From positions 124,001 to 188,000 of the forward strand of contig NW_027271066.1 of the NCBI RefSeq assembly GCF_040938485.1: 64,000 nucleotides of DNA, read 5' to 3'. Under the pieces are notes generated by a model. The model ran no database searches and was not told the DNA's origin. It worked only from the letters and a program-made list of their open reading frames with translations. Made by a program: the position numbers and the translations under genes. Positions 8,162 to 63,879 of this stretch are shown here, piece after piece. The stretch comes from Diadema antillarum (lineage: Eukaryota). The first letter of the stretch is position 1, and every line of letters starts with the position of its first letter.

Positions 8162-10899
8162 CTATGCAATAGTTCCCACCCTGAGATCATCTGTAAGAAC
8201 ATAATAGAAATACACTGTAGTAGTTTTTGGCAACACATATGTTCGTATTTCGAGAGAGAAAATAAAGGGGGAGCTGTAACGACGGCTTAAAGGGATGGTA
8301 TAGTATTGGTTTAAGTGAGAATTCAGCTTTTAACTTTTTGTAAAATAGTTAGAAATCATTCTATGAAATGTTAACAAACATACAATTCTAAGAGGAATTC
8401 AAAGTTTAGATGATGAAAATTGGCTTTGAAATGGCTGAGATATCCAAAACAAAAGTAAAACAACGCACTCCTAATAAAAGGTGGGTACCAACTTTTATTA
8501 GGATTGCGTTGTTTTGGATATCTCAGCCATTTCAAAACCAATTTTATTAAGCAAACTTTGAATTCCTTTTAGAATTATATGCTCTTTCATATTTCATAAG
8601 AAGTTTCTCATTATCTCAAAAAATCCTAATTAACAACACTGGAAACCTGAAGCCCCATTTCAAACGAAACTGTACCATCGCTTTAAACTTTGCACGACGA
8701 CGATGACATGAAAATAAATCAAAATGAGCATATCACATGATATTGTAATTATCGACGAGCAAATTCCCTTTTCACTGAATAAGAAGGTAACATGCATACG
8801 TTCTATCAAATAATAGCAGGAGTGCTTCGAGTCCCCTGCCTTGAAGCCACTTTGTAATCTTCAAACAATGTGTGGAATACAATGGCACATGCAATAAAGA
8901 TGATACGAGACTAAAGCATGTGTATTAGGATATTAAAAGACAGTGATGCCACATCTATGTGATTTGAAAGTAATTACAACGTGTCTCATGAAAATAGGGT
9001 CTTACTCACCACTGTCAGATGAACCACCGTTTGCATCACAGCCTGAGGAAGCAGCATCGTTCTGGGAACAGGTGCCAGTGCCGGCATCAGCCGAGGGGGC
9101 AAGAGGCACGTTTGGAGCCTGTGCGACTGGAGGTCGTGGTGCAGCAGGTGCTGCTGGGCGTGGCACCGGTGGTGCAGCAGGGCGTGGTGCAGCAGGACGT
9201 GGTGCAGCAGGGCGTGGTGCAGCTGGGCGCGGTGCAGCTGGGCGCGGTGCAGCAGGGGCTGGTGCAGCTGGTCGTGGTGCGGCAGGTACAGCTGGGCGTG
9301 GAGAGGGGGCCCGTGGTTGCACTGGAGAAAATGCGGGAGGAGCAGGTGGCGCAGGAGCTGGTGGGCCAGGGACCGGAATGCCTGCACCAGGAATGCTTGC
9401 AACCGTTGGGGAACCAGGAGCTGTTGCCGACGAATCTGACTCCCCACTAGAGTCAGCATCGGCTGCGTCAGCAGCAGGAGCAGCAGCTGCAGCAGCTCCA
9501 TCAACTCCATTAGCCCCATCTCCCGTATCAGCGGCATCTGTGTCAGCACCGTCGACGGTTTCAATGGTGTCGACCTCCTCTTCGCTGCTATCGCTGTCGG
9601 CATCACTGCCCGCTGTTCCAGCATCTGTAGCAGCGTCCGTCCCGTCAGCGTCAGCGGCGGCAAAGACAGTGCCGTCTCCTGGTGCAAATCCCACACCTGG
9701 CACGGGTGCTGCAGGGGCGTATGCTGGAACACCAGGAGATGCAGGAGCGTATCCTGGAACACCAGGAGATGCTGGGGCGTATGCTGGAACACCAGGAGAT
9801 GCAGGGGCGTATGCTGGAACACCAGGAGATGCAGGGGCGTATGCTGGAACACCAGGGGATGATGGAGCGTATCCTGGGACACCAGGGGGAGCAGGAGCTC
9901 TTGGTGGTTGAACAGGAGCACTTGGACGAGGAGGAGTAGGAGCCCTTTGGGGAGGATAGTAAGGCGCAGTCGGAGCTCTAGGGGGAGGAACAGGAGCCTG
10001 AGGTGCTCGAGGTGGGGCTACAGGGGGTCTTGGCGCTGAAGGAGCTGCAGGAGGTACTGGGACCGGAGCCCTAGGTGGTCCAGGTGCCACAGGAGCCCTC
10101 GGTGGCGCAGGTGCTGCAGGCGGGGCCGGTCCTGCAGGCGGGGCCGGTCCTGCAGGCGAGGCCGGTCCTGCTGGGGGTGCGGGAATAGGCGCGCTAGGGC
10201 CTCCGCCCCGACCACAAGCTCCTGAGTAAGAAACCGTGATCGTCGTTCCACTGGACTCAGAATCAGCCTCTATGTCACACTCATCGTTGTAGGTCTTGCC
10301 ATTGCTTCCACACACAGTACCAGAGCGACCTCTTTCGCACGAGTCCCGTGGCACTGTGGACACAAGAAGTTCAACAATTTGATGTAAAAATGTAGATGTA
10401 AATGTACATGCCTATGCTATCTTGTATGAGTGCTTGTTAATATGTTTCACCACTGCTTTCAGTATATGTAAATCAATTTCATCGATTGAATTCGGCGCAT
10501 GCTTCTGCGTGAGTACGTACCGATCTTCGGTATATCTGCGACTTGCACTTCATGAGCAGTTAAGTTATGACATTCTTTTTTTTTAAAGACCTCTTGAGTG
10601 TTGCAGCTGATGTACTCTACAAAAGATGCATTTGATTAGATTGAGAGTGTTCTATCATAGTTTCAACATTTTCATGCTTGAAAACTAGGATTGTGATTTT
10701 ATTTATCACACTATCTTGTAAGAAGGTGCACCTTTGAAAAATGACATATTCTCTCATAATGGATTATATTAGACTGTTGGAAATTAGCTGATTCAGAAGA
10801 AGTCAGCAGCTTGGTAAATTCACCTCTTGGGGCAGCTAGTGACAGCGTCGCTAAAGACAAGAGACAGCCGAGCACAGCTAGACTTGAAATCACTCGCAT
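8162..10899 (-). CDS. Gene A: secreted Pro/Ala/Arg-rich and acidic Asp/Gly/Ser-rich protein with an N-terminal degenerate (4-Cys) Kazal domain, 482 aa; candidate skeletal/tooth matrix protein
   Basis: Coding exons 10899-10824 (MRVISSLAVLGCLLSLATLSLAAPR+G), 10353-9010 and 8190-8162 (DDLRVGTIA*). All GT-AG, all phase 1, total 1449 nt in frame. Non-coding exon about 11550-11440; 3'UTR intron 8119-7784. Confidence 0.85.
8287..8686. mobile_element. Palindromic MITE with TTAA-AG termini (Kolobok-like), inside the last coding intron of gene A
   Basis: Ends TTAAAGGGATGGTATAGT and ACTGTACCATCGCTTTAA; long internal inverted repeat (TGAAATGGCTGAGATATCCAAAAC...GTTTTGGATATCTCAGCCATTTCA) centred on GGTACC near 8487. 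Confidence 0.8.
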
Positions 10900-11439
10900 G
10901 ATGAATCACGTGACTGCAAAAAAGGAACAGAAAAGATGCAAAACAAGTGAAAATGTTTATAGATGGCGTACATTGTGCGATTCTGCTAATGTAGGTCGCA
11001 TTTCAGCAATAATTGTCCCAACGTTCAAGCAGTGGGCCACTCCTTCCCCTTTAAATTATCCGTTAATCTATTAATATGTGTGTAATTAGACGTCATATGA
11101 AGTATTACAATGATTTGCTAAAGTTTCCTAAGTTTAGCGAGCGACGTGAAGTTTGAGAGGTTTCATTAGTATGTTCTAACTTCACACATATACGTGCAAA
11201 TACTCAGTGAAAGCGTGTGTTATACCCTCCACATGATATGAAGAATAATGCACTACTCTGCATACCTTTCATGGTGTTGTCAAACAGCAAAGTATAGTTG
11301 CATATCTAAAAGTTATGGACAACAATGAAATATACTTTCAAGATCACCCTTACCGCGTTATCACAAAATCCATAATCGGGAAATTTGTCTCATCATTTAA
11401 AAAGTGCAAGGAACTCTTAACAAAACGTTCAATACTCAC

Positions 11440-11581
11440 AATTGAAATGCTTTCTTCTTAGAGAACTTGACTCTTAGCTGAAAAAGGATGTCTCTTCTCT
11501 CTGGGTGCTCTGGCGTGGTTGCGGAGCAGACTTAAGCAGCCCGAAGTGATGCTGCTTTGAAGAGAAACTCCTCTATATATA
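11440..11581 (-). promoter_or_regulatory. TATA box and non-coding first exon of gene A
   Basis: TATATATA at 11581-11574; donor GTGAGT at 11439; acceptor TTTTTGCAG 14 nt upstream of the ATG. Confidence 0.6.
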
Positions 11582-13361
11582 CCATTTTCCCTCCCAGAAA
11601 TACGCTTATTCACAACCCATGGTACAGATTGGAGCAAAGATTGCAGTCAAAGGACACTGCAGCAAAGATTCAGGGATGCTCAATCCATCAGAAGCTGCAT
11701 GCACAGTAGCAACTTCCGAATAGAGTATGGCCATTGTGAGTAAACAAATGAAAATTTCCAAGAGAGATTACAAGATATACCCCAGTTGATACTCTCATTT
11801 CAATAAAAATGTATGTCAGTTTCAGCGTTCAATGTCATCACATCGATTGCACTTACTTGGGTCAAGATGCTGCATGAAGTTAGCTGTCATTCTATTAAAT
11901 CCATCTGATTGGTATCGCTCTAGAAGGAGAGAGAGGGGTTCTCCTCAGCCTTCATTGTTATAGAAATACATCGCGCTCCAAGAGTGATTCATCCTCAGGA
12001 AACTAGGAGACTATGCAAGCTCCGCGCTACTTCCGATCCCTATTAAACATTTAAGGTTTCAAAATCAGTGCTTGTTTTCTGATTGAGAACTCCACTATTG
12101 TTTCCTGTCGGGAAAACGCAGTGAAAATCCGTGATTTACTGTAAAGTCGAGACGTGATTGACTTTGAGCTCTTCAAAGTTTGACGGATCATTTTTTTAAC
12201 TCTGAGGATTGTTTGGCGGGAAACGTATAGGGCGAGATAATATCAGCCTGACGAATAGTTCTCCAAAAAGGATGATTGACATACTCGTGAAAAACATACA
12301 GCTGGTGAAACGTTTCACGGTCAACAACGTCTGAGGATCATGTTTGCGTCTAAAAACTTCGAACTTATCAGTCTAAAGGAGTAGGATTGTCTCCCAGAAG
12401 ATGCGAGAAAACGGATTTTGTCATTGATGTTAGGCCTTGCCTGTAAGATGCCGACCCAGTTTGCTGTTGTTGTTGTTGTTGTTGTTTTTGTTCATTATCA
12501 GCTAAGCAAAGATTGCCTCTTTGAAAATGCTCAAACTTTAGTAATTTGCGTTCGCGATGACATGCATTATAATTTATACACGTTATAATTATGTGTATTA
12601 TAACATTATGATAAACATGCACATATACATACGCGGTGCATGCATTTATGTCGATCGGGGAATTGTACATAAATTACTCAAACAAAATTTGTGGTCCTGC
12701 TGTTTCAGGTCTGTGTCATTAATGGACAGATTGATAGCTTGTTCTCTGTTCATTGATATTGTAGGTGTGTCAATTGTAACTTTCGTTGTTCTATGTCAAT
12801 GTGATTTCTTAGTTCGTCTGTGGTGATCTTTGAGGTGATATGCATGGTGTGAGATGTAGAATAATCTATATTTCAGTGAAATGTATTCCGATAATTTCTA
12901 GGGTTAGTAGACGTTTCTTTTGTCGGATTCGGTTTTAGTATACGTACGTAATATCAAAATCGATTACATATAAATTGAAAAAAAAGAAAATTAAGCAAAC
13001 ATAAAAAGGTTTATACATTGTTTCACGTTTATTCCTGTTACTCCTAGCGTAAGGATAAATAGACAAACGTCCAATTCATCACTCTTGATAGAGAGAGAGA
13101 GAGAAAGAGACAGGGAGAGAGGCACAGAGAATCAGAGAAAGAGAGGGAGGGAGAGAAAGGGGGAAGTATTACGAACACATTCCCATTATCTGTTGCGTTG
13201 CAATGAATTGCTGGCATAATCGAGGGAGTTCAGAGTCAATCATATAGAACATCATTCCCTTGCTGATAAAGTTTATGGAAAATATGTGCGTGTATACTAG
13301 TATGCATTTTATAACATCATGCATGGGCATGTACTCGCGTATGTGTGTATTTGTATCTATC

Positions 13362-13365
<4 letters not shown>

Positions 13366-13403
<38 letters not shown>
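13366..13403. repeat. (GT)n microsatellite
   Basis: Direct dinucleotide run. Confidence 0.9.
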
Positions 13404-13404
<1 letters not shown>

Positions 13405-14909
13405 ACGCATATTATGTATGTATGTGATGTGTAATCTTGTATGATTTTGTTTGCGAATGTTTAAGAGACAATGGGCAACCGGACTAATAGGGGGAAAAAA
13501 GCAGCAGAAGATGTAACAGGGACAGCAGCACGCTCATAGCAGTCTTTTGTCTTGGCCAACAGGATAATGCCGTCAATAACAGCATATCTGCTTTACATTT
13601 ATAGTAAAACATTAGCTTGATTTGACTCTGGACCTGAGAAAGTGGGTTACGGTAGTGTCCTGTTTTGGGATTATAATACGCATGCGTTAATATTCCTCTC
13701 CGAAATCTTACAGTCTTACGGGCATTATCTGGCAAATAATGACGATGCTTACGCTTTGAAGCCCCACTCCCCTCTTTTGACATCACAAGTTTAGCCTATA
13801 CTGTATTCTCAAGCTATTGGTTTGCCTGTGAATCAGTAGCAAAACAGTACGCGTGGAAGGAAGACACTAAATCTTCTGATCACAACTATTGAAATAATAG
13901 ATTAATAGATTAATTCTAATTAATAGAAATAGATTAATGTACGAAAATAACGTTATGAGTTTTGCATAATCAGGTGATAAACAAGTTACGATGTCAATAT
14001 GTCCCTCCTTTCATGTCAATAAAGCAAGGTCACAAGAGACACAAATAATATAATTACGATGACTGCACATGTATATGACTTATACTTTATAATTTTCAAA
14101 TTCTGTGATTGGTCTTTTACCACAAAACTTCTTCTTTATTCCTCTAACATATGACTAAAATCGAATACTTTTCCTTTCCTAGTTTTGTTTCTGTTTTTGC
14201 TGTGCCATCTTTGGCAGCTGCTTGGGATGTCACGGGCTATTACCGGAGAGATTGTGATGAATATCATAGCAATGATTGGAGTATCATTCAGACAACATTT
14301 ACTGCTTTCTTGACGTTAGAAGAAAGTCCAAGCATAGACCTCAGAATTTGGTAATGATTTGTAACCGAATTTGAATACATCCACTAACTAAACACAGTGG
14401 ATTATTTTGTTTTTGGCAGAGACAAACAATGACATAACTTTTGTGATATACTGATTGGTATGCACGGCCATGCAGTGAATTATGTATACTGTAGTTGGAC
14501 TAAAAACAGGCAAACTAAAATTTGTTCGTGGATAAATGCAATGTCCAGTTATTATTGTTAATATCATGAAGTTATGCCAATTACTTAGTTATACACGATG
14601 ATGAATTCACATGTGTTTGTGTAATAATTTTATGTGTAAAAGAGAGTGTGGACGCACATATTGTGTCCAATACAAGCCACTACAAAACACCAAGAGTTTG
14701 TCTTATAAAGCCCCCTAAAACCTGACTTCTTAAAGTATAGCGGCGAAATGTAAAGCATGGCGTCATGTCAGGGATGATATTATGTTTGCCATCAGTATTT
14801 TATTTCATTCATGCCGTATTTCATACCACTTTCTTTAAAAGATCTCTGTGATGCAACCGTAACTTAATAATAAATTATTCTTATGTTTATGGGTAAAAGT
14901 CTTTAAGTT

Positions 14910-16050
14910 TCAATCATTGTCAAAGTGGTTTTGTGACAACAGATTAATTGTTAATATTGAAAAATCAAATTATATGTATTTTTTAAAGGTAGAAAAAAGA
15001 TTCCAGAATTGGAACTTTATGATGTAAAAATGAATGATGTAAAATTATCTCGAGTAGAATATACACAATTTTTAGGGGTTTATATTGATTGTAATTTGAA
15101 CTGGAAAATACATATAACTATGATGAATAAAAGAATTTTGAGAAATATTGGAGTAATTAATAGGTTAAAAGGTATTTTATCTGCAAAGGTTTTGATTTTG
15201 TTATATAACAGTTTGATTTTATCTCATTTGAATTATTGTAATGCTGTATGGGCGAATACTCCTCAATCAAATTTACACGACACTTTCATCCTTCAAAAAA
15301 GAGCAATTCGACTCTGTACAAACTCGCATTATAAAGCGCCGTCAATGCCTCTGTTTCTGAAAATGAATGTTTTGAATATATATCAATTGAATGAATTTAA
15401 TATTCTTATGTATATGTACAAGCATAAAATGAGTTTGCTACCTGAGATGATTTCTGGTATGTTTGAATCTAATTATCAAATTCATAGTTATAATACTCGC
15501 ATTAGTAATACAAATACCGTATCATTTATTTAAGGTAGATAAGATGTATGTAATGCACACACTTAGACACACTGGACCCTCATTGTGGAATTCTTTACCA
15601 GATACAGTTATAATTTCTCCAACTACAAATATTTTTAAGAAAAATCTGAAAAGACACTTGTTAGAAAGTTAGAGTGGTCATTATGAAATACACTATGATT
15701 ATAGATACTTTTAAGGTTTTTGTTTTCTAGGAGTGATATGACTAAACACTATAATTTCATTAATGATAATATATTTTTTGTGTATGTTTGTCTGTTTGTT
15801 TGTTTGTTTTTTGTAATATTTTCACCTGTCCTACGTCTTGATCGTAATGCAATATTATTTCCTATTATTCTGTCTGTTGGGAACTACCCTGACAAGACTC
15901 CGGTCTTTTGTAGTTTCCATGTTTCATTAAGTTATTATTTTACGTACGCATGTTCATGTACTCGTTTACTGTCCTCAGATTGTCATTGTACAAATTATAT
16001 GTTTTTTAAATGAAACAGAGTAAAGTTCAAGTTCAAGTTCAAGTTCAAGT
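14910..16050 (+). mobile_element. 5'-truncated LINE (L2/Crack/Daphne-type): end of RT plus C-terminal ORF2, 3'UTR and (GTTCAA)n tail
   Basis: KWFCDNRLIVNIEKSNYM, then (frameshift) QFLGVYIDCNLNW...LYNSLILSHLNYCNAVW...LQKRAIR, and GPSLWNSLP in another frame; short tandem tail AAGTTC x5 at about 16023-16050. Confidence 0.85.
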
Positions 16051-16356
16051 TTTCTGAGGTTTTCTTCAGTTACCTCCTAGAGCCTGTTTTAAAGTTGTTA
16101 GACGTGAACATAATTGTCCTAGTTTGTTCTATATCTGCTATTATTCGGGATGTTTGTTGTGTATTCCCTATGTTTTGTTTGTGTGTCATCACTGAGAGCC
16201 AAGTACTGAAAAAATTAAAAGAACTACATGTATAATCATTGTTGAAGAACATACGCCATTTGATTCCATGGGAATTCACTCATCAAATACAACAGTGTAC
16301 AACCCCTTCTTACACGTCCACACATAAACACGCACACAGAACAACTCTTCTCTCTG

Positions 16357-16392
<36 letters not shown>
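16357..16392. repeat. (CA)n microsatellite
   Basis: Direct dinucleotide run. Confidence 0.9.
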
Positions 16393-16402
<10 letters not shown>

Positions 16403-17593
16403 GTACATACCCACATTAAGGGTACAATGACTCAAAGCTTCACTACAGACAAGAATCAATGAATCCTTGTTGTTAGGGATTTTATTTTTCGCAATAAATA
16501 GATTAAAAAATGAACAATGATAAACAAAAGGATGATAACAAATAAATAAAGGAATGTGAAAAAATAGTGAATACATCACCTCTTACATGTACGTCGTAAT
16601 AACGATAAAAAAGGAAGAGCCGAAGAAAGAGAGAAAAATAATGTATAAATAGAAGTCATAGTAACGTTGTCAAGGACGTTGCTAAAAGCCAATGTGTACG
16701 GGGAAATGTACCGCTCAATGGGATGGGAAACTTCCTTAACTGCTTTGTATATAAGTCTAAATGACATTAACGCACATAGCTGTTACAAAATCGTTCATGT
16801 CTACTGGTATAAAACAAAAGACTGTTAATGGCATGTAATTAAATTTCAGTTCCCGGACTATTCGCCTCAACAGCTAAGGGACGTCTGCATCTATATTCGG
16901 ACGCTTCGCCTCTTCTGCGTTTATTAACGTCAATGCCCTGGTTTTCCCGCCGCGCTCCCTGCGATCGGAATACCTCTCTGCTGGTCTTGATGTCGGCTCA
17001 TATGAACGTCCTTATACAGAGTCACTGCATTTGAACATAATGAGAATCATTGCTTTAATGTTAAGAAGCGCGTGACTTGACGCGAAAGATGATGCAAGAA
17101 TGGAGGGCAAAGCAAGCGTAAAGAGGGATACAATACATAGCACAGCATGAGTAATGAATATAATGATTTAAACATTCATTTCATGGAAGTATCGTTTTCC
17201 ATTAAGTCGTTGGCAGTCTTTGACAGGTTTTGTCATGAGTTGAAGTTAGAGATCATGGAGTTACAAATCTGTGTGATTGCCCTTTATTTCACCTCTTGTA
17301 AAAGTAAATAAATAAACAAACAAACTTCTTAAACAGTAATACAAAAACCATGAAAATGCTCACGTGGCTCTGAACACACAAAATTGAAATAGAAGTAAAA
17401 TTTTCGTAAACCCCTTTTTTCTCATACAGAAAGAACCCATGGCAAGAGTAATGAACAATCCTTCCACCTCCCTTCCTGTGAGACCTTTGCGAATACCTTT
17501 CGTAATATGTAAGATCATTTTATTTTGATACTCTCACTAATTGACTTTGACTATAGCTTAAAATAAGAAAACAAACGACATACCCACCATGTC

Positions 17594-20030
17594 TTAGCAG
17601 GCGCCATCCCTAGCTTTAGCGAGCTGGCGATCCCCCCTGATGCAAGCGGAGTATCGCAGGTCGCACAGGCTTTTGTAGGTGTGCCCATCCGTCCCACAAA
17701 CCTGCATGGTCTGGGCAACATAGTTGGTGGGGCAGGGGTCACAGGTCTTCTTCAGGTCATCTGGGCACCAGTGGTAATGAGGAAAAGAGGTTTTTCTCTT
17801 TTAAATTTGGTAATCCCATTGACGTAGCAATCACTGTCTTTTGACAGAGTATCCAATTCAATAATCCAAAGAGAGCAGCTATGGACAAGGTGATGTACCT
17901 AGTCAGCGACGGGTCTTTTTTTTTCTTTTGCTTTGCATAAGTTTCTCTGGGAAGGAGGATATGGTTTAACTGGCTCTATTCAAAGCAATTAACCTGTTTA
18001 GCAGTAAACCCATCGAAGATTATTCTGTTATAAATTTGATCCTATTGTTTCGAAAAATTTTGTTTTTGTCATCGTCGAACTATTTGATTAGCCTAATTTG
18101 GAACTCTCTTAGACAGGGCCATCTGAATTAGTTATTGTTTGCTTTTGCACAATTTATATATAAAAACCTGTAACAATGATAAGTTTTATTGCCTAATTAA
18201 GGCTGTCGTGCATTAGGACATAGTCTACCTCAGTGAAGGAAAGTTTCAGGATTGGTATTTACTCTTGAAATGTCAAGATCTTGAAAGGGTAGACAAACAC
18301 GTCTGAGCTTACCGTAATTAGACGTTGTGGTGCAACCGTTGCTACTGCCACCCGGTTCTCCGTTGTCGCATCCATTATCTCCGTTATCTCCGTTATCTCC
18401 GTTATCGCCTTCGCTTGGAGCCTCAGGTTCTGGTTTAGGCTCTGGAGCAGGGGCTGGAGCAGGAGCAGGAGCAGGGGCCGGAGCTGGTGCAGGGGCCGGT
18501 GCAGGAGCCGGAGCCGGAGCAGGGGCAGGAGCAGGAGCTGGAGCTGGAGCCGGTGCTGGAGCTGGGGCAGGAGCGGCTGGTCGTGGTACAGGTACAAGCT
18601 GGGGTTGACGCGGTACAGGTGCGCGAGGAGCTGGTGCCGGCGCTCTCGGAACAGGCGCCCTGGGAACAGGCGCCCTGGGAACAGGTGCCCTCGGAACGGG
18701 AGCCCGTGGAGCAGGTGCTCTCGGTACAGGGGCACTTGGAACAGGTGCTCTCGGCACAGGAGCTCTTGGAGCGGGAGCTCGTGGCTGGGGCGCGCTGACT
18801 GCGGGGAATCCAGCAGGAGCTGCTGCCGGGAAAAAGGGGGCAGGGGCAGCGGCAGGAAATCCCGGGGCAGCGGCAGGAAATCCCGGGGCTGCAGCAGCAG
18901 CCACTCCACCACCAGCGGCTTCAGCCTCAGCTGCAGACACACCTCCTTCTCCGCCATCGCCCCCTTCTCCACCATCACCCCCTTCGGATGCACCTTCTTC
19001 AGCCGACGCAGCTGCAGCAAATGCTGCCCCTACACACTCCTCGCTGCTGTCACTGTCACAGCCAGCTGAAAAGAGAAAAAAATCACTATATGATCGTAGT
19101 GTGTTTTCCATTGCATCCAGATGAATGTTTCAGTAGACAAAGTTTCCAACAGCTAGGGACTACATGAACTTTATAATGAGTTTTTTTTTTTACTTTTGTT
19201 TTTAGTGGTATCAAGATTCCGCATGATGACTTGACTAGAAGTCTAATTTATTCTAGCGAAATTTAGGAGTCTTGAAAGTGTTTTTCCAAAATGCTTTGAG
19301 TAAGTACCAGACAAAAGGTATTTTTCTTCTTTTTCAAATTAAGTTATTAGTCTGAATTGGGATGTAATTACCCGCTGCTACTTCAAAACCGACAGCTCCA
19401 TCCGCCGCATCGAATGCCGCGAAAAAGCCACCTTGCGGAGCGGGAGCAAAAGCGGGAAATGTAGCACTTGGGGCTCTTGCAGGGAAGCCAACCGCAGGTG
19501 CGCTTGCCGGAAAGCCGACTGCTGGAGCCCGTGGGACTGGGGCATAAGCTGGGGCACTTGGTGCCGGTGCTCTGGGAGCAGGGGCTCTTGGAGCAGGGGC
19601 CCGTGGAGCAGGAGCCCGCGGAACAGGGGCAAATGGTGTTGGAGCCCTTGGGGCAGGAATTGGGGCTCGTGGTGCAGGTGGCTGAGGGGCTCTTGGTGCT
19701 GGGGCCGCCGCAGGAGCGCATCCTCCTGGACCACACCCGCCGCCGTAGGATCCTCCGCTGGTATCACACGAATATCCAGGATCACCGTTGCTGCAGCCAT
19801 TGTCATCTCGTCGTTCTGGTGACAGCAAAGTGATAATCATGAGGTTGAAATCATTAATAAAGTTGGTAGTTGTTTGCGCATCTGTAGTGATTTAACATGA
19901 AAGGAAAAGTGGCCATTGATTGTTAGAACTCTTGAAAACAAGACGATATCTTACCTCTGGGAGCTGATATCACTACGCCCAAGGTGCACATGAGGGCAAA
20001 AAGTGTTGCAAGAATCCTTGTTGACTCCAT
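17594..20030 (-). CDS. Gene B: secreted Pro/Ala/Arg-rich protein with acidic Gly/Asp/Glu spacers and a C-terminal Kazal domain, 479 aa; candidate skeletal/tooth matrix protein
   Basis: Coding exons 20030-19955 (MESTRILATLFALMCTLGVVISAPR+G), 19815-19372, 19065-18313 and 17760-17594 (DDLKKTCDPCPTNYVAQTMQVCGTDGHTYKSLCDLRYSACIRGDRQLAKARDGAC*). All phase 1, 1440 nt in frame. 3'UTR intron 17583-17025. Confidence 0.87.
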
Positions 20031-20419
20031 GACTCGAAAGTTACCCTGAAATGCAAGACAAAATTAATGACTGTGAACTTTTCGATGTGAACGAAAATTT
20101 CATCTCGTTGATTTAGGCCTACATAAAGTAAAACAATCAAAACGAAGCTGCTGAAATGCTTTTAAAAGCACTTGATACGAAAAAGAAGCTTACAGACATT
20201 CACCATCAGTTCACTTTTCAAAGTGTTCAGTGCGTTCTATTCTAAACAGTTTGTCAGGATTGGGTGTAATGTGGAATGCACATCACGTGTTATAGTAAGG
20301 AAATGAATGAGTGCAAGAGGAGTAAACAAAAAAAGTACAAACAAAATACAACATGCTCTCTGTTAGCTGAGAGAATCAAAAATTCAAGAGTGAATTATGT
20401 GAATAATGCATGAACTTAC

Positions 20420-20556
20420 GATTTCTTCGAGAATGCGATTTCTTCAGAATACGAGTTCGCAACAAATATTCCTTTCCTTTCCTTTCCGTGGTCTTTCTTT
20501 CGCTTTTCGAATCCGACCGACTGATGGTTTCTAGCTGTAAGTCGAGCATTTTTATA
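20420..20556 (-). promoter_or_regulatory. TATA box and non-coding first exon of gene B
   Basis: TATAAAAA at 20556-20549; donor GTAAGT at 20419; acceptor TTTCAG with exon start at 20045, 15 nt before the ATG. Confidence 0.65.
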
Positions 20557-21399
20557 CATTTTGGAGCTGCATTCCGTCAGTCCCTTTGAATGCATAAAAG
20601 CTACGACATTTGGTTAAGATTTGATAAAATCGTTCTTTTGTGTGGTTACTTGAAGTTTCTGCTACTGCAGTAATTTATCACAACATCACAAGAAGCGGTT
20701 GAAGAAATGACATCGTCTTCATTGATGTTCACCTCGGACTGCGTTGACAGACAGTCTCCATCTACACAAGGAGATACCTCGACATTTAGGAGGCAATCTT
20801 GACTACACGTTATCTATCACTATCAGTATTAAAAGGTTAATCGCGAGCACCCTACATCTTGACAGAATATGATTAATTTCATGACGTAATAGCGATAATC
20901 ACATTCATTGCGGAAGTAAAATTGATGTCGGTGTCAATATCAGTCTCTGTATTCCAGTCGTTGTGCTTCTGTATCTCTGTTGTGTTTCACTGTCAGGGTA
21001 CAACCGAAGATCGCAGGAAGTCCTAAAACGAAGCTGAATACTTCACTAATCTACACCAAGAATCCTGAGATTAGAGTCCGTCAATTATCACTGCCTTTTT
21101 CCTCATCAGTCACTGGCAAGTTGTATCTTGTCAAGGAATAAAAAAAGAAAGAAGATTGTGGCCTGCATTTGCTTTGATACGGCCTGTTGACCAAGGTGAA
21201 TACGATAGGGCCCTACGTTGTGTGTTTATGAATCTCTTTGGATGTATAAAAACGTGCAGTAATGTAATGTTAATTCCATTAGCAATGGAAAATCCCTGAA
21301 AGAAGCTTAGAGAGTTAAATTTCAGACTTAAAAAAAGTGATACATCTAAAAGATTATGCAAAAAGGATATGTCGCATTCTTAGTTCTTCATTTTGAAGA

Positions 21400-22130
21400 A
21401 ACTTGTCTTGGTTTGAGAGGGGATAAGTACTCATGAATAAGTATTCGGAAAGAGTTATCGATACATTTTATTCCAAGTAATGAAGAACATGTTTCATTTG
21501 CATGACAAACTAGAAGGTAGGTTAGATATTCAACTTCAAACTATCAAATGCTTCCGACTAATCAGGAACATTTCGGACATTTGATTATGTTGTTACAATC
21601 AATTGATTAATTTGATTTCGAAGTTAGTGTTTAATAGACGGTTTTGACTCTGAAAAGCAGTCTGAAGAGCAAAGTATTACTCGGTATGTCGTACAATATA
21701 ATACCTGAGTCGAACATCATACCACAACACCGCTGAATATGGTTAGACCTCTCCTCAACTTTGAAAAGCTTTTGATGAAATTTATCGAAGGGCCTTCTAG
21801 AGAAGACTTTTGAATGGTTAACTTATATTCTTTCGAAATATAATGAAAATGCAAAACGTTATTCTTCTGGGCAAAATAGTTATTTCAACACGTTTATTCA
21901 AGGTACAGGAAATGATTCTTTCCGACTCTTGCTCACTATATAGTTGTACTCTATTGGGTCTATAATGTAAAGTCTCTTCTCTGACATTTTTCCCCCATTT
22001 GCAGCAGGTTTTACATTTATGTGCATTATGCATAAAGTCCCCAAGACTTCTAAGTAGGCCGTAACATAGTAACGAAATTTGGTCTATTAGCAATTAAGTG
22101 TAACTCTGTTATTCAATTTATTCAGAGAAC
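21400..22130 (+). mobile_element. Possible decayed L1/Tx1-type LINE 3' end
   Basis: Broken frames give EHFGHLI and NVILLGKIVISTRLFK, resembling the post-zinc-knuckle ET..HL and NxIILxAKxxI motifs of Tx1/L1 ORF2; many stops. Confidence 0.3.
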
Positions 22131-22319
22131 AGCAGCGTTTTATAGAAATTAATGTAAAGTGACTGTTTTGTGTTAAAAAATATGATCACACTTTCATACA
22201 CTGGAAGAAAAAATTACACCCGACAAACAAATGAACAGCTCTAGAGTGTAGAAGTTGGGACCCATTGATTACTTTAATGTGATGCTATAATCAATTATTA
22301 CGGCTAATATATCGACTAG

Positions 22320-22322
<3 letters not shown>

Positions 22323-22364
<42 letters not shown>
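22323..22364. repeat. (TA)n microsatellite
   Basis: Direct dinucleotide run. Confidence 0.9.
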
Positions 22365-22366
<2 letters not shown>

Positions 22367-23468
22367 TATATAAATATTAGCATGTGTGTATTTATGTATA
22401 AATGTGTGTGTGTGAGTGTTTGTGTCTACACGGTAAATTTAAGATTTAAAATATGCATGACTTTTTTACTTACATGATATCTTTTATCATAATTTGGAAA
22501 CTCTTTTAGGGAAATTCATTATGTATTTTTTTCATATATCTTTTTATGACGGAAAATAAATGCAATAGAATATCATACAATAAAATCTTTCGTTTCAAAG
22601 ATTGAGTTCTTGAAGTTACGCTTCATTTATTTAGATGCAAGCTTGCAGCTAACTCTTTTAGGACCATAACCTGGCAATACAGAGGGTATCATTGTCATTA
22701 CATCCAACAGAGTTACAAATGATTGTTAGTTAATCTGTTGGTCAAACACATCCACATCAACCGACCTGAGGAGAACTTTCTTGGACGCAGTCATTTTCGT
22801 AGAAAGCATACCCACACTAAGAATGACTGAACATGCAACCGAATGATATTGATTGATTTGAGAATCAATCAACTGAATGCTTTAGAAAACCGAAGGTACT
22901 TTAAACAGCAATGAAATTCACTTGGCGACAAAGGTTTTTTGTTTCAATGAACTTTAATTTTCAGGCGCGCGTTTGATGCAACGCTGCAATAAATAACTCA
23001 ACTATAAACAAAATCATACAAACAAAAATATAAAAAAAATCAACACATAAACAAAATATGGGAAATAAATTACAATAGATTACAAAAATAATATTTTGAC
23101 AAACAGGGCAATGGACTACGATAATGTAATGAACGTCTTACAATGTACCACAGGTCTTCTTTTTTTCTAGGAATTTACTTTGTTATTCAAAAAGACGTGT
23201 CTTCAAAGATTTCAGTTGAGAGATACATGACGAATGTAGAGTATTCACAACGTGGAGAGAATCGAAGAGTCGTTATCCTCTGTTCCGGAGCGCTGCACTC
23301 GTATAAGTGAGCGTCGCTGTCTTAATTGGATCATCTGTGGTTTTGCCACCAAATTTTGAAAGACGAGAAGAACATTACCACCTGGAAGAGATAAACGAAG
23401 AATTAGTATTAGAAAAAGGCTTATATTACATAATGACTAACGCGCACATCTAAAGGAAAACAAATACT

Positions 23469-23824
23469 TTAAAGGTCCTTTTCACCTTTGGTAGCAGTGA
23501 TTAAAAAGATGTTCGAGTAATCACATTTGATGCATATGTGTACGTTAGTGGTATCACTAAACATCCTACCATACAAAAATTTAGCAATAAAGCCTAAAAT
23601 AGAAAGAGATATCACTATTTTCTCACTAAACCAGAACTATAGACGGTTTAGTCTAGAAATTTTTTTATCATAACTGTTGTTCACATCTTCTATATTTAAC
23701 ATTGCTAATACCTATTAACATTATTATATTGGTTGTTTCTATCTTTGCCTCACATTTCAGAACTATTTTGAAGCACCAAAGCTGGGTTTTTGTTTCATCT
23801 GCAAATGATAAACAATGCCTTTAA
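23469..23824. mobile_element. Non-autonomous TTAA-flanked DNA element (Kolobok-like), copy 1
   Basis: TTAAAGG...AAATGATAAACAATGCCTTTAA; aligns along its length with 46967-47338 (shared TAGACGGTTTAGTCT and TTTCAGAACTATTTTGAAGCAC). Confidence 0.75.
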
Positions 23825-24668
23825 GTGATTCAAATCTTTCTAATTTCATGATGCATCCATTGTGTGGTTAAAAGAGTTCACTGGCCGTGTACAAGGCGTT
23901 AACAATGGATATCTTGACAAAAACATTAAAGACTTCGGCAAATTTTAAATCATGATATTAGAAAGAGGAAGAATTGTGTCACGGACCTGGAACCCAAATA
24001 GGTTCTCGTATATATGACGGACGGAAATGTCTAAAGTTAGATATATAAATAACTTTCCTCAATGGAACGACAGTGGGTTGGAAAACAGATAATATCTCAG
24101 ATCGTGTATGATTTTCGTTTCCCCAAGATGATTTGGGACACATTTAAAGACAATCCTAGCTGTACGAAAGTTGGCAAAGTAATATGATTCCCTATATCAT
24201 TTACCCATGATAATGTCTCGTTCATTAGAAAAGGCAGTACGTCTGTTTGTTTGTTTGTTTGTGTGTGTTTTTTTTAACAGGGGACACAATGGTGATGGTA
24301 AATCCTGAATGACTTGGGCCATCCAACTGCTTGCACCAAATGTTGGCAAAACTTCCTGTTATCACCTGCCCGCCGAGCCTCTCCGTACTCTCTTTCCAGT
24401 TGTTATGACTCCAAATCACAAACCATGATGCTGGTCAGATACGACTAATATGAATCGCGAAACCTAGTGTCCAAAGGCTGCACATCTTGCCCTCAGTTGC
24501 AATTTGCCAGCTAATTCAATTACAAGAATTCACTATGTTGTGTAACATATGGCACACTAATAATCAAAGTTTGTATTGGGTTATGTTCGGAGAGAGATTG
24601 TCCTAAGGAAACTGATAGGAAGATATTTCTCTTAGACATATTCTCTTGGTCATGTTCTCACCTATCCT

Positions 24669-37277: not shown

Positions 37278-39379
37278 TCAGTGTTTGGCACAGCCCGGAC
37301 CACCCTTACCGCCGGCGCACCCAGCACCGCTCGCTGGGCCACAGTTGCTTCCGGGTGCGTCGCATCCTCCATTGCCTCCACCGTTCCCGTTCCCGGCCCC
37401 GATACCATTCCCACTGCCGCTGCCACTTCCTTTGCTCCCTCCACCACCGTTGTCACCACTTTTCCCGTTGCCGTCTCCATTCCCGTTGTCACCGTTACCG
37501 TTGTCACCGTTACCGTTGCCATCTCCATTGCCGTTGTCACCATTGCCATGACCATTATCACCATTATCGCCATTATCGCCATTACCATTTCCATCGTGAC
37601 CGTTCTCTCCGCTTATGTCACCAGTCGGGACTCCTGGAGCAGGTGCAAAGGCAGGTACCCTTGGTACTGGCCTGCCCGGAACTGGCGCCCTCGGTGCGGC
37701 TGGTCTACCTGGAACTGGGACCCTCGGTTGGGCTGGTACTGGAGGTGAGGGGGCACGGGGTGGAAAGGGTGGGCGAGGAGCGGGAACAGGAACCGGAACA
37801 GGAACAGGAGCAGCGGCAGGAGCCCCTGCTGCAAAGCCCGGAACAGCTGGAACAGAGGGAGCTGGTGCGGCAGAGCCAGATCGACCCCAAGATGTACCAC
37901 TTCCTCCTTGTCCATCTGCTGAGCCCGATGAACCACCGGTCGTGGCACCACACTCTGCGCTGCTGTCACCCGCATCGCAACCGTTGGCACCACCTGATCA
38001 AAGGGGAAAAATAATCTTAGTTATTAGATTGAGTTCATATACAATGACAATAATGTATTTGGGTTAGGCGCAGTATGTACATGAACACTGAATATAAATA
38101 TCAGACATGTGCCATAAGGCTAAGTGTACTAAAAGTCATACCAAATGTCATACAGACATTAGTTTTGTTTTCAGTATTCTGTCATGTATCGGCCCGTGCT
38201 TAATCTTGTTTTCATAAGACACAGGCACAACAACCTTGCAATAGACACATGTAAGTTAAGAATTCCAAATACTTTAAGACGGTGATCTTGATCTCCTACC
38301 TGCGCCTCGTGAGGTTCCTGCCCCTCCTGCCCCTCCTGCGCTAACGCCGCCACCAACTCTAGCCGCTCCAAAGGCAAAGGTACCCGCGCCAGTAGCGGAA
38401 GCCACACACCCAGTGTCTCCCCCTCCGTCACAGTCACCTCCAGCACCTGCTACCTCAGCTCCATCTCCTCCTCCTCCTCCTCCTCCATTTCCGCCCTCTG
38501 TCGCTCCAGTCCCACTCCCTCCGTCTCCTCCGCTCCCAGACTCGCTGCTGCTGTCGCCCGAACTCCCTCCAGAACCTCCAGAAGTACCGCTTCCTCCACC
38601 TCCACCACCTGATCCGCCGTCGGCGCTACCCTCTGCACCACTCTTGCCATTTCCATCTCCACCCCCATCTCCGCCACCATCAACACCACCGGCATCCGGT
38701 CCATCATGGTCTGCACCAGCACCGGCCACGGCATAAGTTCCCCGTCTGTCACCTACGTGACCCACTGCTGCACTACCACCACCACCACACCCGAATCCGG
38801 GATTCACACCTGTGCAGCTTCCGCCTGTTGCAGGGTCAAAAAAATGAAATGAAAACGTGTACATTCTTTCGAAATCACTAACGAAACTCTGCACAAATGA
38901 AAAAAAAATCAAACAAACCAAAACACACGCACACACACACATCCACATCCACATCCACATACACTGAAAAGTTCTCTTTGAGCTTCGTGAGTTGTATGCG
39001 AAGCCAGATAGTGGTACATGTATTCGCAAATTAATGACCTAACTCACCGGAATGCTTGTATCGAATGTTAGCTAGCATAGATCCCTTACACATACAATAA
39101 CTGGTTACTTTTCAATACGAGTCTCACTTTAAGCACAGATGGAACTCACTGAGACAAAGTTAATCGGTTTCGGAGATTATTGTCAAAAATTCATTGTGAC
39201 AAAGTCTCCATTATTTTTTCAGCCAAACATTTCTGGTCAGCAGGGTGATGAATTTCACAGAAATTAGACAGCACGATCATTAAAAAGGATTATTGACACT
39301 TACGACTTGGGGCTGCTAGAGCTCTCGAGATGAATAATCCTACACAGAGTATGGCGACCAGGTTCGTAGAGATGCCCAT
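37278..39379 (-). CDS. Gene D: secreted mosaic of Gly/Asp/Ser-rich, Pro/Val/Arg-rich and Gly/Asn/Asp-rich blocks with paired cysteines and no Kazal domain, 438 aa
   Basis: Coding exons 39379-39304 (MGISTNLVAILCVGLFISRALAAPS+C), 38824-38300 and 37993-37278 (GGANGCDAGDSSAEC...PRVPVPGRPAAPRAP...GDNGDNG...GCAGGKGGPGCAKH*). Phase 1, 1317 nt in frame. Donor GTGAGT at 37244, acceptor before 36241, AATAAA candidates at 35899-35872. The true Gly-rich frame of the last exon is absent from the ORF track because it has no start codon. Confidence 0.8.
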
Positions 39380-39870
39380 CTTTGTAGCAACCTGCAAAAA
39401 AGATAAACCAAAGAAGCGATTATTAGTGTGGGAGGGATGTCTTATTGCATTTGCCAGCTACCTCTCAAGATCTAGGATTATCAGTGGAGAGTGACGTGCA
39501 AGACACACAATAATTGCAATGATGATTTTATGCAGCAGAAAAGTAACAATTTTGATAGTTACATTCGAAGTCACAAGAATGAATGACTCTTATTTGATAA
39601 CCATCACAACGAACTGTTTTTCTTTCATTTCAATTACAATAATTACCAAGAATATCAAAATCATAATGCAGCTATTTTTTTAAGCAATCTTCCTGCCTGA
39701 ACTGCTGATGGTAGTTACTTAAGAGTTATTACACTTATTTTTCCAGCTGAAAATCGTTTACTGGTATATCTTGTTGCATATTCAATATGTACACTTAGAA
39801 AGAAATGAAAATACATAAATTAATCTGCACTACTGCAAGCAACGATAAATTCATACAAAGTTTGCGTTAC

Positions 39871-39999
39871 CTACCAGTTTGCTTCACTATATGCCGTATT
39901 TCACTATCACGCCGCCTTTCTTCCTTCTTGTTCAGTTTTCCTTTCCACAGATTCTTCGAAGAACTGATGAGACAGTCTCTGACCGATCCAGTATTTATA
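39871..39999 (-). promoter_or_regulatory. TATA box and non-coding first exon of gene D
   Basis: TATAAATA at 39999-39992; donor GTAGGT or GTAACG at 39874/39870; acceptor TTTTTTGCAG with exon start at 39391, 12 nt before the ATG. Confidence 0.65.
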
Positions 40000-43386: not shown

Positions 43387-43599
43387 NNNNNNNNNNNNNN
43401 NNNNNNNNNNNNNNNNNNNNNNNNNNNNNNNNNNNNNNNNNNNNNNNNNNNNNNNNNNNNNNNNNNNNNNNNNNNNNNNNNNNNNNNNNNNNNNNNNNNN
43501 NNNNNNNNNNNNNNNNNNNNNNNNNNNNNNNNNNNNNNNNNNNNNNNNNNNNNNNNNNNNNNNNNNNNNNNNNNNNNNNNNNNNNNNNNNNNNNNNNNN
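43387..43599. other. Assembly gap (213 N)
   Basis: Run of N. Confidence 0.99.
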
Positions 43600-44857: not shown

Positions 44858-44908
<51 letters not shown>

Positions 44909-61000: not shown

Positions 61001-63879
61001 AGAGAGGAAAACTGACATGAACTTTGCATCGTGGGAGCTGCTAGAGTGGAAGAAACAACAATATCAAGTAAGTTCAACGTCGTTAAAGTTCAATGGCGTT
61101 GTTTCCTTGAAGTCACCACGCGAACTAGACGCCCACGAGTCATTTGCCCAGCTAGACATTGTAGCGTCAAGCTCGAGGACTTAATGTTTGTAATGTCGAA
61201 CTTGTTGGCCTTTTAGCCAAATTACGAGCTCTTAGAACTTATTTGCCAAGTGTCTAGCTCCTGGACAGTATATCTCGAGAGACTATTTAACACTGTATAA
61301 CTCACTGTATATATCGTGAGTTGTATAAACTCGTGGGCTATATGACTCGTGGTCCGTATGACTCGTGGGCTGTATGACTCGTGGGTGTCTAGCTCGTGAT
61401 GTACACTCGGATTTCTTTTTTCGAGGGAATATCTTCTGAGGTTTGTAATGTTGATGTACCTGCTGCTGATGTCGTCAGTAGCGCTGCTGCTCTTGATGTG
61501 GTATCATCTGTGGTTTGTATGGTAGGCAAACCGACTGATGTTGTGCCTGGGGATGTTGTTGCTATCGACGTGGTACTATCGGTCGTTTGTATTGTTGATG
61601 TACCTGCCGTAGTTTCTTTTGTTGATGTACCTACTGACGTTGTGGTTGGTGGCATCGTTGTGGCAGTATCAGTTGTCTGTATTGTTGATGCACCTGCTGA
61701 TGTTGTGATAGATGGAGTCGTTGCTACCGAGGTGGTAGTATCTGTTGTTTCCATTGTTGATGGACCTAATGTTGTACTCGGAGGAGTCGTCCCCTTTGAA
61801 GTAGTACCACGAGTTGTTTGTGTTGTTGATGTACCTGCCGATGTTGTGCGTAGTGGCGGCGTTGCTGTCGAAGTAATATCGATTGTTGTTAGCGTTGTTG
61901 GTGTACCTGGTGCAGTCGTGGGTTTTGAAGAGGAAATCGTTGCAACAATCGTGGGCATTGACGTAGATGTTGTTGTGACTGCAGTTTTCAATGTGAAACA
62001 AATCGTGGGTCTTATTGTAGTGCAGATGGTCGATTTTGAACATTTTTACTTTACATTTTTCTTATGGATCACTCTATGCATGTTATTGTAGGGCATTATG
62101 CTTTAGGTATAGATGTATCTTGCATAATTCAATACAATAATATACAAGTATTGTGATTGCGTTTGTGTTATTATGTCTGTTTGTATGTAAGTTGCTACTT
62201 TGAGGGTGCAAGTCCGATATGTTGGTTATCAGTGTGATTTGACCGTGATTATCATAATTATTGTTATCACATATTATTATCACTATCAATCGTAAAATCT
62301 TTCCATCTTCCTATGATGATTATCGCTGCGAGGGTAGCATGCAATCATCCGACAGAAACGCATAATTTTATGGTCCTACTTAATAGCTACACCCTGTTCT
62401 GAAAAGAAAAAACAAAACAAGAAAACGTGAAGGTAAATATCAAATAAAATGGATAAAGATTGAAATTAAAAACAAAGTCATGAAAATAAATATAAAATAC
62501 CAGCTCGTTGAGGTAGAGAACAATGTTTCTACATGTGTATTTGATGGAAAGAAACGTGCACTCAAAGCAATTAAAATGATATGAAAGAAGACAAGACGAT
62601 AAATGAATATAAATAATATATAGATATTAGACAAGATAATTGACATGAATATCAAAACGTGGGAGTTGCTCACAGAAGGAACACACTACAACATAAAGTA
62701 GGTTCATCTGCAATATTTTTTTTTTCTGGCGTCTTTTCTCTGGAGGCAATAAACATCTGACGTTCGTAGCTGTAATGTACCTGCTGCTGATGTGCTCCGT
62801 GGCGCCGTAAGTTTTGAAGTGGTAACATCTGTGGTTTGTATTGTAGATGATTTAGTCGATGTTGTGTCTGCTGGTGTCGTTGCCCTCGAAGTGGTACTAC
62901 CGGTCGTTTGTATACCTGCCGTAGTTTCTAGTGTTGATGAACCCACCGACGTCGTGGTCTGTTGCGTCGTCATGGAACTATCAGTACCTGTTGTCTGTAT
63001 TGTTGGTGTAGTTGATGTTGTTGTGCTAGATGGCGTCGTTGATGTGAAAGTTGTGATACCTGTGGTTTCTATTATTGATGAACCTAATGTGCTCGGAGGC
63101 GTCTTTGCCTTTACCATGGTACCAATGGTTGTTTGAATTGTTGATGTACCTGCCAAAACTGAGCGTAGTGGTGGTGGTGGGGGGGGGGGGGGGGGGATGA
63201 GGGTTGAAGTAAATATCAAATACTGATTCGTCGAGGCAGAAGAAACATGCAAACAAATATATCGTATAAAGATTTTATGAATGAAATGTGAAATTAAGGA
63301 TAAGAAGATGAATTTACATGGATAATTGACAGGCAAGATAATTAACATTAATTTTGCTGCATGAGATGGGTTACAGTAGGGGGGGGGGAAACGTTAAGTA
63401 AGGTTATTGTTTATAACTTTAAGCTTGATTAGCATTGTTGCTTTCGACGTAATATCATCTCAGGTCTGCACTATAGATGCTTGATGTACCTGATGCTGAT
63501 GTGCTCCGTGGCGCCGTTGGTTTTGAAGTGGTAACATCTGTGGTTTGTATGGTAGATGAACCAACTGAAGTTGTGTCTGGTGGTGTTGTTGCTCTCAAAG
63601 TGGTACTATCGGTCGTTTGTATTGTTGGTGTACCTGTTGTAGTTTCTATTGTTGATGAACCCACCGCCGTCGTGGTCTGTGGCGTCGTCGTGGCGCTGTC
63701 AGTACCTGTTGTCTGTGTTGTTGGTGTAGTTGATGTTGTTGTGCTAGATGGCGTCGTTACTGTGGAAGTGATTATACCTGTGGTTTCTATTATTGATGAA
63801 TCTAATGTTGTGCTCGGAGGCGTCTTTGCCTTCAAAATGGTACCAATGGTTGTTTGAATTGTTGATGTACCTGCCAAAG
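50624..63879 (-). CDS. Gene E (5'-incomplete): Thr-rich mucin-like tandem exons followed by five Kazal domains; probable secreted O-glycosylated multi-Kazal protein
   Basis: Symmetric phase-1 exons 63879-63490, 63158-62781, 61978-61460, 60140-59565, 58754-58362, 56168-55842, 54888-54742, 53734-53378 (K1+K2), 52561-52412 (K3), 51591-51445 (K4) and 50781-50624 (K5, stop). All internal lengths are multiples of 3. Joining the mucin and Kazal halves into one transcript is inferred. Confidence 0.62.
56912..57255 (-). CDS. Candidate alternative terminal Thr/Arg-rich exon of gene E
   Basis: Strong acceptor GTGCTTTTCAG in phase 1; reads ETTKVSRTTRTR...PPIIIEKK*; AATAAA overlaps the stop codon; no convincing in-frame phase-1 donor. 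Confidence 0.45.
58240..58265 (-). CDS. Candidate short alternative terminal exon (A)ACYNNAI* of gene E
   Basis: Acceptor TTCTTTTCTCCTTCAG after a 96-nt intron; downstream donors at 58163 (GTAAAG) and 58099 (GTAAGT). Confidence 0.3.
61117..61398. mobile_element. MITE with about 25-bp TIRs and subterminal repeats, inserted in an intron of gene E
   Basis: Left CACGCGAACTAGACGCCCACGAGTCAT versus right ATGACTCGTGGGTGTCTAGCTCGTG; (TATG)ACTCGTGG repeated four times at 61329-61383. Confidence 0.7.

Follow-up and report, generated by a model that had tools for sequence, protein, structure and literature searches.

A tandem cluster of low-complexity and Kazal-domain genes in the sea urchin Diadema antillarum is the likely locus of a known tooth-matrix protein family

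Five co-oriented genes for low-complexity and Kazal-domain proteins lie in tandem on the minus strand of a 64,000-nucleotide stretch of the Diadema antillarum genome (positions 124,001 to 188,000 of contig NW_027271066.1, assembly GCF_040938485.1), hereafter the window. Reading the window on this strand, with the gene models rebuilt by script, bore out the original prediction, made from the sequence alone, of four complete genes (A to D) and one partial gene (E), the 5' end of which lies past the window's edge (Table 1). The same prediction proposed that the cluster is the locus of a family of proteins described from the tooth matrix of Strongylocentrotus purpuratus, and this is the interpretation evaluated here.

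The four complete genes share a common plan. The coding segments of their signal-peptide exons, measured from ATG to donor, span 76, 76, 82 and 76 nt in A, B, C and D respectively, each ending in phase 1, and all coding introns are in phase 1, exactly as had been predicted, with canonical GT..AG sites. Each signal-peptide exon has a strong acceptor 12-15 nt 5' of the ATG, and encodes an N-terminal hydrophobic stretch of 24-27 residues, judged by inspection, that ends in AAPR, SAPR, AAPR and AAPS in A, B, C and D. At the motif level, a TATA-like box is found 126-143 nt 5' of a GT donor in every one of these genes, a spacing that fits a short non-coding exon 1, and another GT donor follows the stop codon after 41 (A), 9 (B), 7 (C) or 32 (D) nt, fitting an intron in the 3' untranslated region (UTR). 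Hence the motifs behind the proposed promoter, first exon and 3'UTR intron are present throughout A-D, while the transcript structure they would define is predicted at the level of sequence.

Table 1. Positions of genes, gene parts and other features within the window
Feature	Positions	Strand	Details
Gene A	8120..11581	-	482 aa; scripted model
Gene A, 5' part	TATA 11581; exon 1 end 11439; signal-peptide exon 10913-10824	-	exon 1 inferred, non-coding; ATG 10899
Gene A, coding exons	10899-10824, 10353-9010, 8190-8162	-	482 aa
Gene A, 3' part	last coding exon 8190-8162; 3'UTR donor near 8120	-	donor predicted
Gene B	17585..20556	-	479 aa; scripted model
Gene B, 5' part	TATA 20556; exon 1 end 20420; signal-peptide exon 20045-19955	-	
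Gene B, coding exons	20030-19955, 19815-19372, 19065-18313, 17760-17594	-	479 aa
Gene C	24662..28487	-	637 aa; scripted model
Gene C, 5' part	TATA-like box 28487; exon 1 end 28352; signal-peptide exon 27944-27851	-	box weak; 82 nt coding
Gene C, coding exons	27932-27851, 27177-26266, 25997-25227, 24817-24669	-	637 aa
Gene D	36207..39999	-	~439 aa; scripted model, two possible 3' ends
Gene D, 5' part	TATA 39999; exon 1 end 39874; signal-peptide exon 39391-39304	-	
Gene D, coding exons	39379-39304, 38824-38300, from 37993	-	~439 aa
Gene D, 3' option 1	stop 37277-37275; 3'UTR donor 37245	-	by analogy with Lytechinus
Gene D, 3' option 2	donor 37310 spliced to 36241-36207	-	phase-1 donor; from sequence
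Gene E, partial	50624..63967	-	5' end beyond window
Gene E, Thr-rich mucin-like blocks	54728-63967	-	open reading frames up to window edge
Gene E, K1+K2	~53744-53378	-	Kazal exon
Gene E, K3	52561-52412	-	Kazal exon
Gene E, K4	51591-51445	-	Kazal exon
Gene E, K5	50781-50624	-	Kazal exon ending in stop
Assembly gap	43387-43599	.	N run in AT-rich, microsatellite-laden intergenic DNA between D promoter and E 3' end
Rhodopsin-type receptor gene	3766-4827	+	intact single exon; 7tm_1 E 9e-45

The encoded proteins are built from blocks and are acidic overall, with isoelectric points (pI) of 4.05-5.06 for the mature chains. Basic PRAP/PRPAA blocks, free of acidic residues, alternate with acidic Gly/Asp/Ser blocks containing SSEE-type motifs and short-range Cys pairs, and a Kazal module is present in three of the four proteins (A, B and C). 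In A (25% Pro, 24% Ala, pI 4.39), the large second coding exon encodes first a four-Cys Kazal and then two Ala/Pro-rich blocks, the second made of PRPAA repeats, with an acidic Asp/Ser/Gly block containing SSEEE between them. This Kazal scores 29 bits against Kazal_2 (Pfam cutoff 22.8) and is closest to the fourth Kazal of gene E (42%), alignment to which indicates that the C1 and C5 positions are absent. In B (26% Ala, 22% Pro, pI 5.06), the second coding exon combines Cys pairs with PRAP repeats, and the third encodes a CDSDSSEEC motif, an acidic Gly block, PRAP/AP repeats, DNG repeats and a Cys pair; the protein thus moves twice from Cys-pair/acidic sequence into PRAP repeats, before a C-terminal exon encoding a full six-Cys Kazal (Kazal_2, 37.8 bits).

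The remaining two proteins are richer in Gly. That of C (55% Gly, 14% Asp, pI 4.05) has 22 Cys in its second coding exon, forming 11 C-x4-7-C pairs, a FVPQFYPVPIPIPRPRF motif in the centre of its third, a Pro-rich stretch consisting of one 20-residue core only, and a six-Cys Kazal in its C-terminal exon (Kazal_2, 42.9 bits). That of D (35% Gly, 13% Ala, 9% Pro, pI 4.35) has an acidic, Gly/Ser-rich second coding exon and a third encoding a CDAGDSSAEC motif, the protein's one Ala/Pro-rich block, DNG repeats and Cys pairs. No Kazal was detected anywhere in D, and a cryptic Kazal exon was sought for D and downstream of A but not found; hence the description of the cluster as Kazal genes holds for A (four Cys), B and C (six Cys) and E, but not for D. 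Nevertheless, several features tie these proteins to each other: the signal peptides of A and C are 48% identical, B, C and D each have a CDxDSSxEC motif at the start of their third coding exon, and exon-to-exon alignments inside the window reach z-scores of 7-11, with D being B-like in the third exon (z 11.3). The common exon plan makes it plausible, as judged from sequence, that these genes diversified from one scaffold gene.

Gene E is of a different type, with five Kazal domains over four exons, all boundaries of which are in phase 1. Domains K1-K5 score 25.7-60 bits against Kazal_2, and six Cys are found in the Kazals of B, C and each of E's five, with the count for K5 made by inspection of the exon translation, and the aligned segments of K3 and K4 beginning past the first Cys. 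These domains are collinear with the last five Kazals of the Lytechinus variegatus protein XP_041460528 ('dipetalogastin-like', 490 aa), at 55-83% identity per domain, and the two proteins have the same C-terminal ...GCNLAIP end. The short Thr/Pro linker of the Lytechinus protein ends ...RQFGGNNT, matching ...PEFGGNNS at 54728-54940 of gene E, and therefore the Thr-rich blocks belong to E as an expanded linker. This segment spans ~60 residues in Lytechinus, whereas in gene E it occupies ~9 kb of Thr-rich exon blocks, comprising at least eight open reading frames (ORFs) with T-T-S-x-G-T-S-T-I-Q-T-T-D-type repeats. The true 5' end of E, with two more Kazals, is placed outside the window. Further multi-Kazal relatives, labelled 'dipetalogastin-like / agrin-like', are found in Lytechinus pictus (XP_063952263), Asterias rubens (XP_033647454) and Patiria miniata (XP_038054207), a brittle star also has a relative, and by sequence comparison E is the orthologue of this conserved echinoderm gene. 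The L. variegatus orthologue was also surfaced by an exhaustive representative search with the Kazal exon of B, in which the best 150 matches, ranked by summed domains, were multi-Kazal proteins only, a single-Kazal orthologue being absent from among them. Directly after its signal peptide, at residues ~24-44, XP_041460528 carries ...SCEDSDSSDYETMC..., similar to the CDSDSSEEC motif of B, C and D, and possibly a trace of a common origin of gene E and the low-complexity genes.

The association of E with the low-complexity genes extends to other echinoids. In both L. variegatus and L. pictus, the E orthologue is followed downstream, after 7-9 kb and on its own strand, by a D-like gene. This gene has a 73-nt signal segment, phase-1 introns, an ACNDGDSGNC motif, an Ala/Pro block and DNG repeats, ends in a Cys pair, and has a GT donor directly after the stop. 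The L. variegatus D-like protein achieves its top score among the window proteins with D (679, z 16.2; for B, 445, z 17.4). Within the window, the assembly gap between D and E is 3.4 kb from the D TATA box and 7 kb from the E stop, has no exon closer than 3.4 kb, and is crossed by no model; because the adjacency is seen in both Lytechinus assemblies, the order of E then D does not depend on this scaffold join alone. Of the synteny in other echinoids that the original prediction proposed to check, the adjacency of E and a D-like gene is thus found in Lytechinus. The same genes inform the choice between the two possible 3' ends of D: the model that reads through to the stop at 37277-37275 is favoured, by analogy, because the Lytechinus D-like stop has a GT donor directly 3'. 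The L. variegatus gene lacks a 5'UTR intron, unlike all four complete genes in the window, and its first intron (27380-27700 of the retrieved stretch) contains a tRNA-like sequence, ...GTGGTGTAGTGGTTCTGAC...GTTCGAACCCCACC..., which suggests the insertion of a tRNA-derived short interspersed nuclear element (SINE).

The identity of the cluster is best addressed through comparison with S. purpuratus. Mann, Poustka and Mann described in 2008 five tooth-matrix proteins built in just this way, of which four contain Kazal domains. The family was defined by neutral or basic Ala/Pro-rich blocks, free of acidic residues, in combination with acidic Gly-rich blocks, as the original prediction had accurately stated, and by a pI of 4-5, 17-21% Pro and 14-25% Ala (PMC2614417). 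A and B fit this block pattern, with Pro and Ala contents slightly above the published ranges. Sequences from Additional file 7 of that paper were compared with the window proteins by local alignment, with z calculated against residue shuffles. A aligned with an A-type unit in Glean3:17588 (score 168, z 30), sharing the stretch ...AAPR-x-PRDSC-x-RG-x-SG-x-VCGSNGK-x-YND-x-CD..., and with the N-terminus of Glean3:17590 (z 20.6), and the Glean3:17589 peptides TYHNECDVEDDSSR and SGVSISVNHK match the tail of its Kazal. B aligned with Glean3:17587 (z 8.5-10.9), most strongly at the C-terminus (z 10.9; ...PEPE-x-PS-x-GDNGDNG...SNGC-TTT...), and C with residues 241-285 of Glean3:17588 (z 6.2), which include the peptide FVPVVVFPSK identified by mass spectrometry. 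A phosphopeptide from the tooth matrix also maps to this C-like part of Glean3:17588 (PMC2830187).

The resemblance extends beyond pairwise scores to the organisation of the group. As in the window, the signal peptide of the S. purpuratus proteins ends ...AAPR, PRAP-type blocks alternate with acidic ones, a DSSEE motif is present, and the tail combines DNG repeats with a Cys pair. In A-type members, as in A, a four-Cys Kazal (C-x-R-G-x-S-G-x-V-C-G-S/D-N-G), in which the C1 and C5 positions are likewise missing, directly follows the signal peptide. The P1 position of a Kazal domain, defined from the ovomucoid third domain, is the residue two after C2; it is occupied by Arg in A and in three of the five S. 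purpuratus A-type units. Judged by their consecutive gene numbers, the S. purpuratus genes, too, would adjoin a multi-Kazal gene: Glean3:17586, a six-Kazal protein found in the same tooth matrix, is numbered beside the family group (PMC2614417), matching the position of gene E beside A-D. It is probably the S. purpuratus counterpart of E, and its peptide YACFTNTPK resembles ...RACQDNTPS... in the third Kazal of E. The two loci differ in that the window has one each of the A-, B-, C- and D-type genes, whereas S. purpuratus has several A-type units; in that B and C of the window carry a C-terminal Kazal exon, which the 2008 S. purpuratus models lack; and in that C and D are Gly-rich, whereas the S. 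purpuratus group is Ala/Pro-rich.

Some of these differences may be attributable to the published models. Given the internal signal peptides in its sequence, Glean3:17588 looks like a fusion of a C-type gene, a B-type gene and several of the A type. Glean3:17587 ends ...TTTGDY, followed by unrelated residues, exactly at the position of the phase-1 donor preceding the Kazal exon of B, and hence it probably lacks a Kazal through read-through into the intron. The 'acidic Val-rich motif' (31% Val, 20% Glu, 16% Ala) with which Glean3:17588 starts, a region that yielded no peptide, probably results from reading a Gly/Asp/Cys exon in the wrong frame, because the second coding exon of C read one base off gives nearly the same composition (25% Val, 21% Glu, 22% Ala) and is open for 304 codons.

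That this exon is open in two frames across ~300 codons also bears on a more sceptical explanation, that for some of the low-complexity ORFs, chiefly in C and D, translation does not follow the models, the ORFs being instead simple-repeat DNA, pseudogenes or sequences read in another frame. The S. purpuratus model indeed took the Val/Glu/Ala-rich frame for a similar exon, and the RNA support, from a related species, is confined to gene A. However, the Gly/Asp/Cys frame alone is in register with the phase-1 donor that ends the signal-peptide exon of C, with the exons further downstream and with the Kazal exon, and in this frame the Cys count is even, with 11 regular pairs. Furthermore, the D-like genes have been kept with unchanged exon order in two Lytechinus species, and two peptides, FVPVVVFPSK and GVAGGSEDVGK, were sequenced from the C-like part of Glean3:17588. 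It is therefore very improbable that these frames are artefacts.

Transcript evidence was available for gene A. Four sequencing runs contain this gene, three of them DNA, because the introns are evenly covered, and one probably RNA from another organism. From the latter, a 908-nt contig of a related species, ~9% diverged, aligns to 9010-9256 and then directly to 8190-8130, a join that corresponds exactly to the predicted last coding intron (9010|8190), such that this proposed exon junction was matched by RNA. The alignment ends at 8130, ~10 nt short of the predicted 3'UTR donor, with no collinear continuation. Among the indels listed in the DNA runs, the sole one in the large coding exon of A is 9 nt, and those in introns and UTRs include 1, 2 and 7 nt, plus one of 3 nt at 8194, in the intron just 5' of the last coding exon; these sizes fit coding constraint on gene A. 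The last coding intron also contains, at 8293-8685, a very high-copy element with a summed contig depth in the DNA runs of up to 1.9 million, against ~40 in its flanks. Joints of internal deletions and inversions are numerous in it, and its structure is that of an inverted repeat, giving it the look of a miniature inverted-repeat transposable element or a SINE.

Taken together, the window is likely to be the orthologous locus of the known tooth-matrix family, adjoining the conserved multi-Kazal gene. The family identity proposed by the original prediction is supported by z-scores of 20-30 for A, 8.5-10.9 for B and 6.2 for C, and we infer a tooth or skeletal location for the A-D proteins by analogy with S. 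purpuratus. Several observations weigh against this interpretation. Because low-complexity proteins are built of blocks, the shuffle-based z-scores come out too high, D is without a counterpart among the published S. purpuratus sequences, and both C (55% Gly) and D (35% Gly) fall outside the Ala/Pro composition that defines the group. The proteome case is drawn from S. purpuratus; the RNA support consists of one junction in one contig from another species, and when RNA runs were looked up for gene B, none were listed. Motifs are the sole basis for the 3'UTR introns predicted in B, C and D and for all of the proposed non-coding first exons, and the calcium-binding and protease-inhibitor roles of all members are predicted only.

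It could instead be that A-D encode general secreted proteins of the extracellular matrix, mucus or immune system, produced in tissues such as connective tissue, epidermis or coelomocytes and incidental in tooth extracts, rather than a dedicated set of biomineral proteins. Such a view would accommodate the mucin-like multi-Kazal type of gene E, which is also kept in sea stars and a brittle star, echinoderms that have no teeth; in addition, similar abundance in powdered and intact tooth implied that a fraction of the S. purpuratus proteins lies outside the crystals (PMC2614417). However, the family was present in the matrix of hypochlorite-cleaned tooth powder and not in the earlier test and spine matrices (PMC2614417), and a subsequent study of spicules called it possibly tooth-specific (PMC2909932). 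Furthermore, in the sea stars P. miniata and A. rubens, the 10 kb around the multi-Kazal orthologue contain neither an Ala/Pro-rich nor a Gly-rich ORF. A general secretory role for A-D is therefore unlikely, and the tooth-matrix interpretation is preferred. The same sea star comparison, limited as it is by distance, weakly suggests that the low-complexity genes were added in echinoids.

Other candidate relationships did not survive scrutiny. The upstream neighbour of the multi-Kazal gene in A. rubens is unrelated to the family; its product combines a Kazal domain with an acidic stretch and, at the C-terminus, a hydrophobic one that may be a membrane anchor. A word-indexed homology search with the large exon of A returned only a spurious match to bacterial MreC, the candidates being swamped by low-complexity words, and one limited to the Kazal region of A returned no matches. 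The G protein-coupled receptor (GPCR) gene at the other end, the one ordinary gene of the window, encodes a protein 79% identical to a D. antillarum 'octopamine receptor beta-2R-like' and 67% to an L. pictus 'melatonin receptor 1B-A-like' protein, and synteny between it and the cluster was rejected: family genes are absent within 10 kb of these D. antillarum and L. pictus receptor orthologues, and the L. pictus receptor is 5 Mb from the E orthologue. The receptor is not a conserved neighbour, and therefore the label of Glean3:17590, 'similar to serotonin receptor 2B', is only a weak hint. The interval between this gene and A contains a second assembly gap outside the models (6067-6213, 147 N), flanked by (CA)n and (CT)n microsatellites. 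Between A and B, and between C and D, ORFs at 15009-15533 (+) and 34032-34454 (-) look by eye like C-terminal fragments of non-LTR retrotransposon reverse transcriptases, and neither had a Pfam match at E 0.01.

If the locus functions as its orthology implies, the A-D proteins would reach the mineralising compartment of the tooth by secretion. There, the acidic Gly/Asp/phospho-Ser blocks may bind calcium, calcium carbonate or the mineral surface, and at the matrix-mineral interface the PRAP-type blocks may serve as extended, positively charged spacers or may self-associate. The Kazal modules, including that with a P1 Arg in A, could restrain trypsin-like proteases, or could act as a disulfide-locked folded anchor. 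The family would have grown through tandem duplication, repeat expansion, and the reuse of phase-1 Kazal exons like those in E. The locus offers a case for studying the origin of biomineral matrix genes by these routes.

The family has been known since 2008, and its clustering is implicit in the consecutive gene numbers, although no paper describing the gene cluster or its exon structure was found, nor were SPU identifiers for its members found in papers. What this work adds is a clear gene layout of the family in a second, distant urchin, and the suggestion that the multi-Kazal neighbour belongs to the same family picture. As these proteins have been 'hypothetical' since their description, and their published models are flawed, clean exon models should aid the assignment of peptides in echinoid tooth proteomes.

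A more ambitious proposal, which we regard as possible but doubtful, is that the low-complexity genes branched off, in echinoids specifically, from the ancient multi-Kazal gene beside them and were recruited to the continuously growing tooth. Duplication of the 5' end of the multi-Kazal gene would have supplied the signal peptide and the acidic C-x-D-S-D-S-S-x-x-C motif, with phase-1 Kazal exons then being reused, and repeat expansion generating the block proteins. The vertebrate SCPP cluster, encoding enamel, dentin, milk and saliva proteins, is derived from SPARCL1. As an analogy only, that cluster resembles A-D in being a tandem set of secreted, disordered, acidic or Pro-rich, mineral-associated proteins, each with a separate signal-peptide exon and a single intron phase, and in having a parent gene with a Kazal/follistatin-type module. 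The two systems are nonetheless unrelated in sequence, use phase 0 introns in vertebrates and phase 1 introns in the window, and are associated with apatite and calcite respectively. Hence, were the offshoot proposal true, the cluster beside gene E would represent the calcite counterpart of the origin of the SCPP cluster from SPARCL1.

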